From sequence record PQ227241.1: a stretch of 64,000 nucleotides of DNA. One strand, written 5' to 3'. A model generated the notes under the pieces. The model did no database searches. It was not told the DNA's origin and saw only the letters and a list, made by a program, of their open reading frames with translations. Within the stretch, counting starts at the first letter, position 1; the number at the start of each line of letters is the position of its first letter. Shown here piece by piece: positions 85-62,338 of this stretch. The position numbers and the translations under genes are program-made.

Positions 85-807
85 TTAGAAATTACCTTTC
101 TTCATTTTAGAAAGTAATTTTCTACGTTCAGCTCGGTTAATTCCTGGGATAGCTGGTAATAGCATTTTATTACTAAACTTACCTGGCTTGCGGTCATGAT
201 TTAGTAATTGATCAACTACAGCTTGGTCACTGCTTTTAACTCCATTATCCATTTCATCTAATGGGTCCATAATAGCTTTAGCAGTCAATCTTAGATGAGT
301 AACTAGTTCATCAAATGAACTATCGGTATTAATAAGTTGTTTATCAACACCTTCTTTAAGAGCTTGTTTAATAGTTACGTCTTTTACCAGGATATTATCA
401 CATTCCCAAAGAGTTGTATGATGGGTATTTAACATTAATTCAAGTGAGACATTATTGTAATCGTTGTCAGCACTTGAGTGCCAATTGAATTCATCAATAT
501 AGTCATTTAGACTCATTAACTTTGGTGGTTCGTTACTAGAGGTAATTAAACCAATTGGTTGAACATCATCTAGTGAACTTTTATCACTAGTAATTGCAGT
601 TGTTTCAGTAGTAACATCAACTTCTTTTAATTCGTTGGTATAAGTTACATATACTAATTCTTCACTACCGTCATCCAAAAGAACATAGGCTGTTGCTTTG
701 GTGGAATCATCAGGTGCTAATCCATGGATCCTAATACGATTATCATTTACTAATTTACTATAATCATTCCAGGTAATTACGCGGACTTCTTTATTCTCTT
801 TCATCAT
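85..807 (-). CDS. Hypothetical protein (about phiKZ gp52 position)
   Basis: 240-aa ORF ending just before a hairpin terminator; no recognised motif. Confidence 0.6.
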   Translation of the reverse strand: MMKENKEVRVITWNDYSKLVNDNRIRIHGLAPDDSTKATAYVLLDDGSEELVYVTYTNELKEVDVTTETTAITSDKSSLDDVQPIGLITSSNEPPKLMSLNDYIDEFNWHSSADNDYNNVSLELMLNTHHTTLWECDNILVKDVTIKQALKEGVDKQLINTDSSFDELVTHLRLTAKAIMDPLDEMDNGVKSSDQAVVDQLLNHDRKPGKFSNKMLLPAIPGINRAERRKLLSKMKKGNF

Positions 808-967
808 TAGTTACCTCTTTTAATTTGTCTTTAATATAACTTCGGATAAATGCTCGTTTTTCTTCACGAGTTAACCCATGTGGAGCGGTTGGTAATGTGA
901 TAGTACCACTGTTAATTGCCTTCTTCATCCGATCTAAGTCAAAATTAAATTCGGTATGATTTGTCAT
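791..967 (-). CDS. Small hypothetical protein
   Basis: Likely start at MTNHT (967) within the track ORF 791..1000; overlaps the next gene start. Confidence 0.5.
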   Translation of the reverse strand: MTNHTEFNFDLDRMKKAINSGTITLPTAPHGLTREEKRAFIRSYIKDKLKEVTNDERE

Positions 968-1065
968 TATATTGAACCATATTAAGTTAGTAATTGGCAA
1001 TCAGACTATATAAATCTTAATTATTTTTTAGTATATAAGCCTCCCACTAGGGGAGGCTATATTTC

Positions 1066-3261
1066 TTAATAGAAGTCAGAGATGAGTCGATCGTTATTTT
1101 TATCAATAAGGAAAATACCTAGGGACTCTAAGGTTAGATAGAATACACCCATAGTATTTCCAATGATAGTTCTAACGTCAGCAACACGCGTAATAACTTC
1201 TGGAATACGACCAGTTTCTACTACTGTACTCGGGATATGGAAATCACCAATACTGGTTTTATTTTCTTCAGTAACCCATGCTTGAATACGAGCAGCTAAT
1301 TTCTTATCTTCGATACCATCAATCCATTCTTTGATCGCAGTTTTATTATTAAGAGTAACTGAGATCTTTACATGTGAATAAGGTGGATCACCAGCGTCAC
1401 CAAATGACGGAGCAAATACAGTCTTCCACACCAATCCCTTTTTATGAGTTGAGTTATCTTCAGATTTATAAGATTCAGGTCGTTTAGTTTGACCACTTGT
1501 AAGATACTCGGCTTTACCACTTCTAACAGACTCAATAATTTCTCTTTCGATATTACCGGCTTCTTTTAGAATTGAAGCTAAGTCGATTTTCTCTTCAGCC
1601 TTTACCGTCTTAATAATATCTTCCATGAGTTTTTTAGCACGACTATTAATCTTCTTAGGTACTTTACTATCCCTTAGCCCCACGCCTTTAATCTCCATCC
1701 GAGATTCATTAAACATCACCCCTTCTTGGGCATCCTGTGATGCAAAGTAATGTTTAGAACGAGTAGTTAAGGCCAGTACTGCGAAATAAAATTCGTTCTT
1801 CATTGCAAATAGACGAAGCTTATCTTTAGATACACCCATATTAGCGGATTGAATCGCTAAGATATGCATAACTACTTCAGATACTAGAAACACTAGTGCA
1901 AATACTAGTCGTTTAGCTTCATTGCTAAAAGTTACTTTACCAAAGAATTCCTCAACCCACCATTGTAATGTAAACATAGTGGAGTCAGTATCTGAAATAA
2001 CAGCAGCTCGCCTATATACCGTTGGAAAAGCATGAATACTTGATGGTACACATTTAGTCAAGAAGAAAGCTTCAATCAATAGACGATATTCATTAAGAGT
2101 TTCAGCGATATTTCGACCAGTTGCAAAAATTTGATTCAGTGTATCTGGATCAGATTCTTTTAGTTTAGCTTTAGATCGACCTTTAACAGTATCAAAGCAA
2201 ATAAAGCTAGCCAAAAGATCCATATCACCATCATAAGTTGAATATTCTTCTTCAGTGATGATTTGTTCTTTTGTTCCAACCTGGCTTAATTTAATTAGAA
2301 AGCTCTTGATTAATTCTTTATTGTATTTATATAAGTGATATAGATCACCTACATACATAACTGCTGCTCGTTCGACTGGTGTCATCCCAGTAGCTAGTTT
2401 TAAAATCTGTGCCGTGTAATACTTATTTTGCCAATAGTGTTTAGTTGAATAAAGAACCATATCAACTACTTCTTCTGGCGTTGGGCAATGTAGATTAAAA
2501 TTAGTTACTGCTTTTTGAATTAACTCCATATCAGCTACATTAATAATATTTACTAAATTAGCTTTTGTGATTTCCGGAGTATAATAATGCCTATTACCCA
2601 TAATGAATTTTTCATTATTTGAGTTAGCATAAGAGGTACCAGTTCTACAAGTAGATGTTAAACTAGAGTGTGTGGACTTATAATAAAGAATAGTGGCAGC
2701 AGATACCGTACCTCCTGAATATGAGTTATTGTTAATTTTGAAGTTTTCTTGTTCACCTTTACGTACTTGTGCAAGTTCTGTTTTAATTTGTGAATTCTCT
2801 TTATCGCCGGCCTGTAGGAAAGCAGCTGCTTCACGTTCAGCCTGCATCTGCTCACCTTTAACACGCTTACGGTTTTTCACACCTTCAGCAATATAGATGG
2901 AGTGCGTCGACTGTCTAACAGACTCTGGTAAATATGCGGTCATTGATGGAGATAATAATAGATTCTGTTTCTTAACACGGTTAAGGAAAGCCATAAATGA
3001 AACAGTCTTTAATTCCCTATCACCAAACTTATTTTTATCTAGGATAGTTGCTACTGGGTTACGAAGTGCATATTCGCCATTTTGACGTAATTGTTCTTTA
3101 ACAAATTCTTTACATTCTTCTAAACTAATATTTAATTCATCTTTTGTCATTAATTGAAGATATTTGGCATTATCATCAAGACATGCATTAATGATATCAA
3201 TATCACGATGGTAATCATTGACATCTTTTAAAAACGGATTTGGTTGGGCAAATGCGGTCAT
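1066..3261 (-). CDS. Family B DNA polymerase, split subunit (phiKZ gp50-like)
   Basis: Motif B-like KINNNSYSG and motif C-like ISDTDS are present; no exonuclease motifs seen; matches the known split polymerase of phiKZ-like phages. Confidence 0.85.
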   Translation of the reverse strand: MTAFAQPNPFLKDVNDYHRDIDIINACLDDNAKYLQLMTKDELNISLEECKEFVKEQLRQNGEYALRNPVATILDKNKFGDRELKTVSFMAFLNRVKKQNLLLSPSMTAYLPESVRQSTHSIYIAEGVKNRKRVKGEQMQAEREAAAFLQAGDKENSQIKTELAQVRKGEQENFKINNNSYSGGTVSAATILYYKSTHSSLTSTCRTGTSYANSNNEKFIMGNRHYYTPEITKANLVNIINVADMELIQKAVTNFNLHCPTPEEVVDMVLYSTKHYWQNKYYTAQILKLATGMTPVERAAVMYVGDLYHLYKYNKELIKSFLIKLSQVGTKEQIITEEEYSTYDGDMDLLASFICFDTVKGRSKAKLKESDPDTLNQIFATGRNIAETLNEYRLLIEAFFLTKCVPSSIHAFPTVYRRAAVISDTDSTMFTLQWWVEEFFGKVTFSNEAKRLVFALVFLVSEVVMHILAIQSANMGVSKDKLRLFAMKNEFYFAVLALTTRSKHYFASQDAQEGVMFNESRMEIKGVGLRDSKVPKKINSRAKKLMEDIIKTVKAEEKIDLASILKEAGNIEREIIESVRSGKAEYLTSGQTKRPESYKSEDNSTHKKGLVWKTVFAPSFGDAGDPPYSHVKISVTLNNKTAIKEWIDGIEDKKLAARIQAWVTEENKTSIGDFHIPSTVVETGRIPEVITRVADVRTIIGNTMGVFYLTLESLGIFLIDKNNDRLISDFY

Positions 3262-6423: not shown

Positions 6424-7497
6424 TTAGTATAGATTATTTTCTAAAATGTATCGCTCAGCTTGCGCTCGCTGATCATCAGGTAAATAATCACCACGTTGAT
6501 ATTCAAATACTAATTTCTCAATAGGATAAGTTGCATTCTTATTCTTGTATACAGAAATTACATAGCTATGATACTCTAGTTCATACTTAACGTCATGCTC
6601 AATTCTGGTTGAAAAATATGCCATGTTAATAGAACTAACTAGAGGGCTAATATATTTCTCTTCAAATAGTAATAAATTATCAAGTCCTAAACTTGCAAAG
6701 AAATCATGGTTAACCTTAGGTATTAGATAAGATACTTTAATATTACTATATTGTTTAACAATTACACCAATAAGTAATGCAGTTAACTGTTCTTGAATAT
6801 ATTCTACTGCGATGTTATATGCATGGTTAGTGGTGATGTGGTCTTTATTTAAAGTATAGCTACCACCATTAGCAAGAGATAGCTGAGTTTTACGCCTAGA
6901 TTCGTAGATACTATAACCTAGTGTTTGTAAATTAATTCTGTCAAAGCCATGGAAGAATGTACGGAGAAATTCACTAAATAAATAGTTTAATGGGTTCAGT
7001 AGGTTAAGTGATACCACTGCATGATCATCACCATTATCAATCCCATGGACACGATCATATTCCGCGATACGATAATCTTTGCCACTGATTAAAGTTATAA
7101 CTGAACCAGCTTTAACTACATCCCATTGGATCCATGTACCGCTATCGATATATTTAGCTACTTGTTTATAGATATCTAGATAGATAGTTTCTAGATAAGG
7201 TAGTTTCATTAGATTTTCTACCCAAGCAACTTTATTACTATCTACGTCAGTTACAGCACAATTAAAAATAGCTGCTGCCATCTTAAGATTGGTGTACTGG
7301 TCTTTGGCTGTTTTATATGAAACTAAACTCTCTACTATATTTTCAACCATTAGATGTAAAAACTGTTGAGCCACATCTTTACTCAATTTCACCCCAATCG
7401 CTTCATCAATTGAAGCTGAAGCTGTAAGCTGACCTAGTAAATCGTATATTGCTTTTTCTTGGTGGCGCGTATCAAGTACAATGAGCTTATTCGACAT
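6424..7497 (-). CDS. Hypothetical protein, apparent two-domain internal repeat
   Basis: 357 aa; two halves each start with a hydrophobic beta-strand and end in a beta-hairpin-like segment. Confidence 0.65.
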   Translation of the reverse strand: MSNKLIVLDTRHQEKAIYDLLGQLTASASIDEAIGVKLSKDVAQQFLHLMVENIVESLVSYKTAKDQYTNLKMAAAIFNCAVTDVDSNKVAWVENLMKLPYLETIYLDIYKQVAKYIDSGTWIQWDVVKAGSVITLISGKDYRIAEYDRVHGIDNGDDHAVVSLNLLNPLNYLFSEFLRTFFHGFDRINLQTLGYSIYESRRKTQLSLANGGSYTLNKDHITTNHAYNIAVEYIQEQLTALLIGVIVKQYSNIKVSYLIPKVNHDFFASLGLDNLLLFEEKYISPLVSSINMAYFSTRIEHDVKYELEYHSYVISVYKNKNATYPIEKLVFEYQRGDYLPDDQRAQAERYILENNLY

Positions 7498-51897: not shown

Positions 51898-52040
51898 GTA
51901 GAAATGATCCCTCCCCCTCGTTTCTACATTAGTCATAATAAATCGGAGCCAGTCCCCCTTCCAACTGGCTCCCAGAGAGTAAAACTCTTTGCTGGGCATT
52001 AATGACGATATATCGCCTCCCTTCGGGGAGGCTTTATATT
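51898..52040 (+). ncRNA. Candidate small RNA with two C-rich loops
   Basis: Promoter motif upstream, three hairpins, UUCG terminator, no meaningful ORF. Confidence 0.6.
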
Positions 52041-52095
52041 TTGTTTTTACGTGAGTATGTTAAAATATGTACAAATAACATAGAGTAATTATAAA

Positions 52096-60370: not shown

Positions 60371-60538
60371 TTAGAATATACCTTTTATTAATTGGACAAA
60401 TAGATTAGATACACATAGCAATAGAATAAACCATAAACCTAGTCTTTGTAATTTATCTATACGCTTAGCTTTTTGTTTCCTCTCTAATCTAACTAATAAT
60501 GTATTTTTAATATCATTCATTAAATTATCTCAGATTTT

Positions 60539-61069
60539 TTAGACGGTGTATAAACCCTCAGTATTACATGTTGTTATGATATTGTAAAGACGATGCCAAT
60601 AGCGATCATACGTATTTTTACGTTTGTAGCTATTGGTGCGGATAATTAGATTGGCGACCCAGTGATTTTTATCAATGGTCTCATGTAGATGCCCGAAATA
60701 AACCCCCAGTTCAATTTCGAATGGGATCTTACACTCACGCCCCTTACACATTGCTTCACGCAATAAACGCATTACAGAATTCTCTGCATTGGTATCTTGA
60801 AATAAAATACTAATGTATCCAGGGCTACCACCAGTTTCTTCATCAACATGACCTGAACAGCAATAAATAGTTGCAATATTGGTGAATTGGTTAAACCATT
60901 TAATCAATGGTCTACATGCTTCATCAATAAGATCTTCATATTCAGGTTTATACATTACTTTAACAGTATCATCTGCCCGTTGTTTCACGTGATGAAAATA
61001 TTGTTCCCAATTTACATTAGTGTAATATAGCATATCCATATTAGAATCACTCATACAAATCAACCCCAT
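60539..61069 (-). CDS. Protein with TYW3-like N-terminal motif
   Basis: IDEACRPLIKWFN...ATIYCCSGH. Confidence 0.5.
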   Translation of the reverse strand: MGLICMSDSNMDMLYYTNVNWEQYFHHVKQRADDTVKVMYKPEYEDLIDEACRPLIKWFNQFTNIATIYCCSGHVDEETGGSPGYISILFQDTNAENSVMRLLREAMCKGRECKIPFEIELGVYFGHLHETIDKNHWVANLIIRTNSYKRKNTYDRYWHRLYNIITTCNTEGLYTV

Positions 61070-61791
61070 ATGTTATTGGCATATTCGCGGTCATTGAAAA
61101 TGCAGGTAAGATCCATCCGCTTTTGAATACGCGCCAGAATCCATTTTAGTTGTTTAGTTGATAGTTCCTGATTTTGCTTGTACTCACCTGTAGCATGGAT
61201 GTAATAATCAAATTTACGACTTACAGTAGTAGTATGTGCACATGCAATAGCAAATGCTTCAAGTGCAGTTAGTTTGGTTGATCCATTATCATTACAATTA
61301 GGGATAAACTCAAGTACACTATTAACTGCATCTACACCACTACCTAAATGAGCCCAATCTTTCTTGGTGATCTCGATACTCATATCTTTAAGAATAACTG
61401 TATATATGTCACCATTCTCCATAGTGAACATCATAGAAGTATTACCATTAAACAACCTGCGTTCTATGACTGGCATGATATTTACTTCAACTTTAAACCA
61501 ATCAGCTAAATCAACACCTGCGGTAAGGGCATTCAATAGATCATAAACATTATCTATAGTTCCAGCAAAAGCCATAGTTTTAACACGTTTGCCTTGCCAA
61601 GTAACAGTCGGATGAAAAATTATCTTGTGGCAATCATTGTAATATACATCTACACCTTCAGCTTTAGCAGTTAGATCAATATAACCGTTATCTAATACTG
61701 GAAGTCGCCCAATGCTATCAGTTGCATTATTCCGCTCAATTAATAGGCAGTCTGCAATCATGACTTTACCATCATTTACGATATATGTCAT
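61060..61791 (-). CDS. Ntn-hydrolase (HslV/proteasome beta-like) putative protease
   Basis: AAGGAG RBS sets the start at Met-Thr; TYIVNDGKVMIAD, AFAG, LGSG, ALEAFAIA pattern. Confidence 0.65.
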   Translation of the reverse strand: MTYIVNDGKVMIADCLLIERNNATDSIGRLPVLDNGYIDLTAKAEGVDVYYNDCHKIIFHPTVTWQGKRVKTMAFAGTIDNVYDLLNALTAGVDLADWFKVEVNIMPVIERRLFNGNTSMMFTMENGDIYTVILKDMSIEITKKDWAHLGSGVDAVNSVLEFIPNCNDNGSTKLTALEAFAIACAHTTTVSRKFDYYIHATGEYKQNQELSTKQLKWILARIQKRMDLTCIFNDREYANNIWG

Positions 61792-61827
61792 TTTCACTCC
61801 TTATAATAAAATAAATAGGCTTAAGCG

Positions 61828-61949
61828 AAATAAAGCCCTCCCCGAAGGGAGGGCATTATCAATAGGTGGGATCTCGGCGGCACCTTCATTTGCGGACGGG
61901 AACGCTGAAGGGAGATAGTCCGGGAGATCCCGATTTGGATATTCTTTAC
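61828..61949 (-). ncRNA. Candidate small structured RNA
   Basis: Promoter motif, GC-rich multi-stem core, terminator. Confidence 0.55.
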
Positions 61950-61957
61950 ATATGGTA

Positions 61958-62338
61958 TTACTGCAAGTATTTGTTCCCCGCAGTATAATCACCATTGATC
62001 CAATTTTTGATTACAACACTGATCCCTTCATTTTCTTTAACGGTAACCCCCAACTCAAGATCGATTGATTGATAAGCTACAGCAGCCAGTGTTAACCGAA
62101 GATAAACGGATCCATCTTTTTCGATATCGTAGGATACTACGAACCCGTCTTGTAGATTTTGTAGCTGGAATGTATTAGCATGTTGTGGGTGGAGACGATC
62201 CATATTGTACTCGACGACATCTAGTAGATATTGCCGAGCATCAGCAGCATTATCAAATCCGAGATCGCACAGACCGATCGGATAGCGAGCTTGCGTGCAT
62301 GTAACTTTCATAGATACTACACGATGTTGTTTGCACAT
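61958..62338 (-). CDS. Hypothetical protein
   Basis: 126 aa, GAGGA RBS. Confidence 0.65.
   Translation of the reverse strand: MCKQHRVVSMKVTCTQARYPIGLCDLGFDNAADARQYLLDVVEYNMDRLHPQHANTFQLQNLQDGFVVSYDIEKDGSVYLRLTLAAVAYQSIDLELGVTVKENEGISVVIKNWINGDYTAGNKYLQ

Follow-up and report, generated by a model that had tools for sequence, protein, structure and literature searches.

A family of structurally conserved RNAs in Pseudomonas jumbo phages, transcribed as a self-contained unit between PHIKZ288 and PHIKZ289 in phiKZ-type genomes

The RNA described here is encoded on the minus strand of sequence record PQ227241.1, within a stretch of 64,000 nucleotides (nt) that was analysed as a whole and is referred to as the window. 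The window belongs to a phiKZ-type Pseudomonas jumbo phage, and the 1.4 kb round the RNA matches vB_PaeM_HUST_1 at 100% and phiKZ at 99.7% identity. The RNA sits in the gap that separates the PHIKZ288 homologue from that of PHIKZ289, both of which are minus-strand genes, and constitutes a self-contained transcription unit that is started by the non-virion RNA polymerase at about 61948 and ended by intrinsic termination at about 61828. It is made up of one long irregular hairpin, a short unpaired tail, and a terminator hairpin independent of the rest, and it accumulates far above the flanking mRNAs. The RNA is a member of a structurally conserved family of Pseudomonas jumbo phages, in which promoter, RNA, and terminator form a single-copy unit shared by at least five genera of ~300-kb chimalliviruses, and it is very probably a functional, structured, non-coding RNA (ncRNA). 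Nucleus-forming jumbo phages serve as models of phage cell biology and are candidates for therapy, and to our knowledge almost nothing is known about their ncRNAs.

Transcription unit and published catalogue entry

The promoter (61949..61976, minus strand) corresponds to phiKZ P130 and follows the non-virion RNA polymerase pattern (A/G)(A/T)TAC, 14 nt, TAT(G/A) (Putzeys et al. 2024, Microlife 5:uqae002, Table S3), with GAACAAATAC at 61976-61967, a 14-nt spacer, and TATG at 61952-61949. Of 14 inspected homologues, 12 have both boxes upstream of the RNA with the 14-nt spacing unchanged, the exceptions being U310, in which TAGTAG replaces the TAC box, and Phabio, in which the spacing is seemingly longer.

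Promoter, terminator, and transcript data for phiKZ were taken from the supplement of the same study (bioRxiv version). ONT-cappable-seq of phiKZ placed a start site of the class 'middle promoter' at 263172 (+) (P130, Table S3), and an intrinsic terminator, T119, was assigned to 263292 (+); the interval 263172-263292 is TU198, a gene-free transcription unit of 120 nt (Tables S3-S7). Coordinate mapping equates phiKZ 263172 with window position 61948 and phiKZ 263292 with 61828. The ncRNA of the window (~120 nt, 61828..61948, minus strand; Tables S5 and S7, Nanopore cDNA contig ends) matches the TU198 candidate in locus, sequence, start site, and terminator, a single base within the 5' leader separating it from the phiKZ RNA.

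The 120-nt transcript has thus already been catalogued, in 2024, as an unvalidated candidate. Table S7 of Putzeys et al. 2024 lists it as a '5'UTR-derived' (untranslated region) ncRNA candidate associated with PHIKZ289, and 17 short promoter-to-terminator RNAs of such kind are given for phiKZ. Read-through transcripts were noted alongside the dominant short form, and transcripts of PHIKZ287-288 likewise end at T119. For the ncRNA candidates as a set, conservation was reported within the genus only, at the sequence level, by BLASTN. The entry for this RNA carries no structure analysis, cross-genus comparison, or function. Since our literature search found no paper naming PHIKZ288, PHIKZ289, or PHIKZ290, or giving the RNA a structure, family, or function, its family-level conservation, covariation-backed fold, and invariant motifs are new as far as the literature searched shows. 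Short terminated RNAs that precede a phage gene are, as a kind, already known. The RNA upstream of phiKZ gp182 (sRNA005 in 201phi2-1; PMC11512511) is the same type of unit, with a non-virion-polymerase promoter, a structured RNA, an intrinsic terminator, and a conserved gene, and is likewise conserved across jumbo-phage genera; it differs in locus and sequence, and the full-length covariance model R1 finds no copy of the present RNA in 201phi2-1 or EL.

Four public RNA runs were compared over 61560-62159, the evidence being drawn from assembled contigs; a RIP-seq run (X24) had no reads in this region. Ends of Nanopore cDNA contigs fall at 61949 and at 61826-61829, and those of the second group carry poly-T loose ends that represent tailed 3' ends of a minus-strand RNA, and an adapter junction lies at 61829 in an Illumina contig. 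Word depth is 300-3000 across 61820-61959, compared with 26 on the PHIKZ289 side and 60 on the PHIKZ288 side, a semi-quantitative excess of 10-100x. This support is not fully independent of the catalogue, because the Nanopore run and the published data may be one and the same. The unit has its own promoter and start site, as expected of an independent small RNA; its 3' end is defined by an intrinsic terminator, and it accumulates to a higher level than the flanks. Two Nanopore cDNA contigs also carry a poly-T junction at 61863, directly after the conserved ACCU of the tail, a weak indication that a processed species of ~86 nt without the terminator may exist.

An initial annotation of the window, made from the letters alone, had proposed a ~120-nt promoter-to-terminator ncRNA here. 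Its promoter, stems, loop, and terminator were all found on the minus strand where it had placed them, and its predicted start, 61949, lies one base from the published 61948. Both published ends fall within one nucleotide of the proposed transcript, in agreement with contig ends and depth.

Fold and comparative evidence

The minimum-energy fold of -49.4 kcal/mol has a z-score of -3.1, none of 200 dinucleotide shuffles being as good, and reproduces exactly the multi-stem core architecture given in the initial annotation. The GC content is 55% over 61820-61939 vs 30-40% in the flanks, in line with the initial annotation's remark on a GC-rich structure in an AT-rich genome. All features that follow are on the minus strand.

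The transcript opens with an unpaired 5' leader of 17 nt (61932..61948), which is moderately conserved, reads ACGAAC in most relatives, and is 15-30 nt long across the family. The 5' strands of helices P1 (61931-61924) and P1b (61922-61920) occupy 61920..61931 and pair with 61868-61880. P1 is formed by GGGATCTC at 61931-61924 and GAGATCCC at 61875-61868. Both helices covary; P1 has 7-8 bp and P1b 3-5 bp across the family, with a combined stack of ~12 positions (judged by eye in phiKZ, RVTF4, Psa21, and D6). An asymmetric internal loop follows, with ~8 nt on its 5' side (61912..61919), which ends in and overlaps the invariant AUCUCCC (61916-61910, identical in 13 of 13 distinct homologues), and UG on its 3' side (61882-61881), which lies within the invariant GGUGC. 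The last two Cs of CUCCC are paired within P2. The P2/P2b hairpin (61883..61911) covaries too and is paired in 100% of cells in 13 sequences: P2 joins CCTTCA (61911-61906) to TGAAGG (61888-61883), P2b joins GCG (61905-61903) to CGC (61894-61892), and the 8-nt apical loop UUCCCGUC at 61902-61895 carries the invariant CCCGUC. The internal-loop UG and the 3' strands of P1b (61880-61878) and P1 (61875-61868) together make up 61868..61882.

Between core and terminator lies the conserved single-stranded 3' tail ACCUAUU (61861..61867); CCACCUAUU is identical in nine closer homologues and variable in four distant ones. The intrinsic terminator (phiKZ T119; 61826..61854) consists of a hairpin at 61854-61835 and a following UUUAUUU; a terminator scan gives it a UUCG loop and eight pairs, seven of them G-C. 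Its sequence is free across the family while the hairpin is retained by compensatory changes, and the U tail reads UUUAU in most homologues. BLAST of the 163-nt intergenic region found the terminator hairpin plus UUUAU as a repeated motif, at 11-13 places per phiKZ-type genome, 9-13 per PhiPA3-, PS119XW-, or 201phi2-1-type genome, and only two in Phabio; the repetition agrees with the conserved phiKZ terminator motif of Putzeys et al. 2024 and accounts for the weak covariance-model and Rfam leader matches mentioned below. Two candidate pseudoknots, between apical loop and 5' leader (ACG with CGU) and between tail and GGUG, were rejected, since inspection by eye of phiKZ, PS119XW, and PhiPA3 showed neither to be conserved.

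This RNA, earlier one line of a supplementary table, is more strongly constrained than its neighbouring genes. In comparison with T2P, a divergent Phikzvirus, identity is 95.5-97% for the core and 95.5% when the core is taken as 61861-61948, 82.7% for PHIKZ288, 78.5% for PHIKZ289, and 62.9% for the terminator. Searching with the PHIKZ289 protein recovered homologues in RVTF4, Psa21, and D6 at 74%, 39%, and 38% identity, and the same RNA lies upstream of each. Pattern scans of IMG/VR added four further distinct phage contigs, of which three are genome-sized (305, 310, and 314 kb) and one is 51 kb long.

The structural covariation among homologues, on which the initial annotation had made its proposal depend, is abundant. 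In alignment A3, which holds nine distinct sequences, RNAalifold gives a consensus of 29 pairs, 16 of them with compensatory changes. For the 21 core pairs of the nine sequences 94.2% of cells pair and 12 pairs are double-changed, a result that none of 500 shuffles equalled; in slid controls, with the partners moved by 1-3 columns, pairing fell to 36-45% with one or two double-changed pairs. When the set is enlarged to 13 distinct sequences, the share of paired cells is 93.9% and compensatory changes are seen in 25 of 31 pairs, among them G-U pairs that are meaningful on the minus, that is RNA, strand only. Cell counts overstate the number of independent events, because the homologues come from one clade and some are closely related. 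When folded independently, 11 of 12 homologues adopt the same architecture, and three motifs show no variation at all, namely the internal-loop AUCUCCC, the apical-loop CCCGUC, and GGUGC. The fold thus covaries in independent lineages, as is required of a structured-RNA family, and the sequences form a ready seed alignment for a new one. We know of few lytic-phage RNAs with such comparative support.

In five complete genomes R1 yields exactly one match apiece that exceeds 100 bits, the remaining matches scoring 33 bits or less and being driven by the terminator. Its distant members are PS119XW (53 bits), HPP-Temi (50), a 307-kb contig (47), Phabio (44), and PhiPA3 (33), and all of them keep every helix and motif. 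R1 found no paralogue within any genome scanned and no copy in 201phi2-1, Viktualia, EL, OBP, Goslar, or SPN3US. A metagenome pattern scan gave 41 matches, all due to chance except L033 and L042, which have the same sequence as the 305-kb phage. In a scan of 185,579 bacterial species genomes, none of the 28 matches passed the covariance model, and at that sensitivity no host copy or mimic was found. A looser viral scan produced three real loci out of 74 new ones among the matches listed. Pattern scans miss variant sequences, and further family members beyond those listed may exist.

The RNA matches no Rfam family. Rfam 15, run on the window at gathering and permissive thresholds, gave only terminator-driven matches of at most 20 bits; it gave no match on the RNA in nine homologous loci, and ARAGORN reported nothing. 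Every Rfam 15 family, including tRNA, tmRNA, riboswitches, leaders, 6S, and SRP, was rejected, as no score came near a gathering threshold. Resemblances to the 16S rRNA 3' end, 4.5S RNA, and the T-box, guanidine-III, and NAD+-I motifs are short and unsupported by Rfam models, and are not claimed.

The initial annotation had further suggested that this RNA possibly shares a functional class with another at 51898 of the window and had pointed to a UCCC-containing loop, and neither point is supported. The RNA is not related to the 51898 RNA: R1 returns only an 11-bit terminator match there (51898-52045), and the folds differ. In most homologues that loop carries ACCC, and it is CCCGUC and AUCUCCC that are invariant. 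The 51898 RNA itself (51898-52040, minus strand) has the sequence of a 141-nt Northern-validated ncRNA upstream of PHIKZ302 (Putzeys et al. 2024, Table S7). In the window, as in phage PA7, it shares its strand with the PHIKZ289 RNA, and the published placement is on the opposite strand, ~1 kb off a simple colinear mapping.

Possible modes of action

The reading that we tentatively prefer, at somewhat less than even confidence, is a dedicated structured ncRNA that acts in trans and is followed by a constitutive, leaky terminator. A stand-alone ncRNA is favoured because the gene context varies, the promoter is dedicated, accumulation is high, and tests of two cis models were negative. The gene directly downstream is PHIKZ289 in phiKZ and T2P, one for a small membrane protein of 62-77 aa in most relatives, and an unrelated gene in Phabio. 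On this reading the RNA would work as a stable ncRNA whose invariant unpaired nucleotides may form a surface recognised by a protein or by a G-rich RNA. The constitutive terminator would leak at ~1% and so supply low expression of the downstream genes, the small membrane protein and/or the PHIKZ289-type protein. The RNA offers a concrete, mutable target for studies of small-RNA roles, whether in an RNA-protein complex, in the control of transcription by the non-virion polymerase, or in the control of translation.

Several points weigh against a trans-acting RNA. It is always co-oriented at the 5' end of an operon, as a cis-acting leader would be, and that operon has no other promoter within rows P128-P133 of the phiKZ table. 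Terminated leaders can accumulate too, and depth was read off assembled contigs, all from a single Nanopore run, which reflect abundance only poorly. Because the 13 sequences were aligned by fitting them to the model, the pair counts obtained from them are biased in favour of the structure. Putzeys et al. 2024 contains no Northern blot for the 263172-263292 RNA, and the RNA went unreported in the phiKZ Grad-seq study, which gave two other RNAs.

A cis-acting leader, in which the core would bind a factor or the polymerase, in the manner of lambda nut/N or HK022 put, or a small ligand, in the manner of a riboswitch, and as a sensor or recruitment site set terminator read-through and expression of the downstream operon, is a serious though less probable account. 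The order of promoter, conserved structured RNA, spacer, terminator, and genes suits such a leader, as do the read-through transcripts beside the dominant short form. Among phiKZ promoter rows P128-P133, none lies between T119 and PHIKZ289, and P130 is followed next by P131, which lies at 264056, where PHIKZ289 has its 3' end (Putzeys et al. 2024). In relatives the next start codon follows ~15-25 nt past the terminator, and in all RNA-bearing loci checked save Phabio and the 307-kb contig the downstream genes include one for a small PHIKZ290.1-type protein whose N-terminus is basic. Aptamers and protein-binding leaders typically combine, as this RNA does, variable helices with nucleotides that are invariant in junctions and loops, and the likeness to riboswitches and ribosomal-protein leaders extends to the 5' UTR position and the terminator directly behind. 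Unlike these, the RNA has no antiterminator pairing, no Rfam match, and no constant downstream gene, and no homologue matches a known riboswitch or leader family. Most transcripts terminate, in contrast to put-type antitermination, and Viktualia keeps homologues of PHIKZ289 and PHIKZ290.1 in a genome where the RNA was not found.

The switch itself was sought directly. In seven of the eight homologues with a delimited terminator, the best duplex between the core and the 5' half of the terminator is no better than with a shuffled core; the exception is U305 (-12.1 vs -8.3 +/- 2.3, ~1.6 standard deviations). The core fold is also unchanged when the 3' half of the terminator is blocked. Core and terminator are therefore independent and there is no strand-exchange switch; a riboswitch or attenuator with mutually exclusive terminator and antiterminator was accordingly rejected. 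The complementarity of the three unpaired motifs to the downstream ribosome-binding site is at chance, and no masking was seen.

It is unlikely, in our estimate, that the core is aimed at the non-canonical multisubunit RNA polymerase of the phage or at another machine of nucleus-forming phages, by put/nut-like antitermination or as a 6S-like decoy, or that it represents a ligand-sensing class without strand exchange. Like HK022 put and lambda nut/boxB with N, the RNA is structured, carries conserved unpaired nucleotides, and lies between promoter and terminator without overlap with the latter; this promoter-proximal position, upstream of a separate terminator, is the layout of a put/nut-type antitermination RNA. 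It differs in that the phiKZ-type RNA is mostly terminated, the phage polymerase is non-canonical, and no sequence or model similarity was found. A polymerase- or machine-directed or ligand-sensing regulator would, if true, be the first RNA regulator described for the chimallivirus transcription system.

Small RNAs with UCCC motifs in Staphylococcus aureus (RsaE and RNAIII type) present C-rich unpaired motifs in loops. A C-rich-loop small RNA of this sort, pairing with G-rich Shine-Dalgarno regions and belonging to the same class as the 51898 RNA, is decidedly improbable here. The invariant CUCCC of the internal loop and CCCG of the apical loop could pair with GGAG or GGG, and the likeness to the S. 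aureus RNAs lies in such C-rich loop motifs. UCCC is not conserved, however: the loop has ACCC in seven of the nine closer homologues, and the base before CCCGUC varies (U, C, or A) in PS119XW, Phabio, PhiPA3, U307, and HPP-Temi. The pairing of the last two Cs of CUCCC in P2 also stands against it, as does Shine-Dalgarno complementarity at chance for the nearest ribosome-binding site, the sole target tested. Neither motif nor fold is common with the 51898 RNA, the host and phage lineage is unrelated to S. aureus, and the short interrupted U tail (UUUAUUU in phiKZ, UUUAU in most homologues) is atypical for Hfq-dependent small RNAs.

The RNA is very unlikely to be a functionless by-product or stability element that arises where the promoter of the next operon happens to precede the terminator of the previous one, its structure serving as a 3'-UTR or terminator accessory. 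PHIKZ287-288 transcripts do end at T119 as well, and phiKZ has 17 such short RNAs listed (Putzeys et al. 2024). Against this are core conservation far above that of the neighbouring genes, invariant unpaired motifs with compensatory changes across genera, and a dedicated promoter conserved along with the RNA.

A 64-aa protein encoded by the open reading frame (ORF) at 61801..61995 (minus strand) can practically be dismissed: the ORF is open in phiKZ-type phages and T2P, but its start codon lies inside PHIKZ288, has no ribosome-binding site, and is upstream of the mapped start site, the frame is not conserved, with stop codons in RVTF4, Psa21, PS119XW, and PhiPA3, helix substitutions are compensatory rather than synonymous, and there is no Pfam or other family match. 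The internal start that the initial annotation had set against translation of this ORF is therefore present. Several GenBank phiKZ-like records annotate the ORF as a hypothetical protein, e.g., PhiPizzaParty (L004:566-760); on present evidence that coding sequence is a mis-annotation, and the finding corrects it in those records.

Downstream genes and variable context

The PHIKZ289 homologue (61060..61791, minus strand, from the annotation) is reached only by terminator read-through. Its product resembles an Ntn-hydrolase of the HslV/proteasome-beta type, on weak signals: a match to phrog_1040 'peptidase HslV family' (E=1.4e-5) and ESM-Atlas neighbours with PF00227 Proteasome, AAT, and CBAH folds. 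Sequence searches of Pfam and PDB gave no match. An alignment of eight PHIKZ289 sequences shows Met1, Asp7, and Asp14 to be invariant, and the majority consensus starts MTYIV.DGK.

At the loci listed here the small membrane protein of relatives has 56-77 aa and two helices, and no PHROG match was obtained for it. Its gene starts 15-25 nt past the terminator and overlaps the PHIKZ289 homologue by ATGA (L006:1271-1504, L007:1334-1504, and L008:1286-1504, with equivalents in L014, L015, L019, L021, and L094); it has been lost from phiKZ and T2P. The 310-kb phage has the RNA and the small gene, and a PHIKZ289 homologue was not found there in the 2 kb downstream or by a first-look whole-genome search.

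PHIKZ290.1-type proteins of 43-49 aa are encoded downstream in all RNA-bearing loci checked except Phabio and the 307-kb contig, and in these proteins a single hydrophobic helix comes after a basic stretch at the N-terminus (RRQKA.RLD..QR). Their genes lie at 60371-60520 (minus strand) in the window and at L006:2400-2543, L007:2238-2378, L015 (oriented 6850-6993), L068:2582-2713, L070:2622-2762, and L063:1919-2059. That this type is an RNA-binding arginine-rich peptide is only a guess. The PHIKZ290 homologue (60539-61069, minus strand; 176 aa) has a sub-threshold match to the Pfam TYW3 methyltransferase (E=0.002, 17.9 bits vs a cut-off of 27). Judged by N-terminal likeness in the ORF lists, no homology search having been run, PHIKZ290-like ORFs occur only in the window and in T2P (L003:2405-2914).

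In PS119XW, HPP-Temi, and PhiPA3 the RNA is followed by a second hairpin (CUCUCCG...CGGAGAG; L068:1620-1900, L070:1620-1875, and L217), and ~250 nt of further non-coding sequence separate that hairpin from the PHIKZ289 homologue. The second-hairpin stretch of PS119XW gives a Thr_leader match in Rfam of 28.5 bits, which is below threshold.

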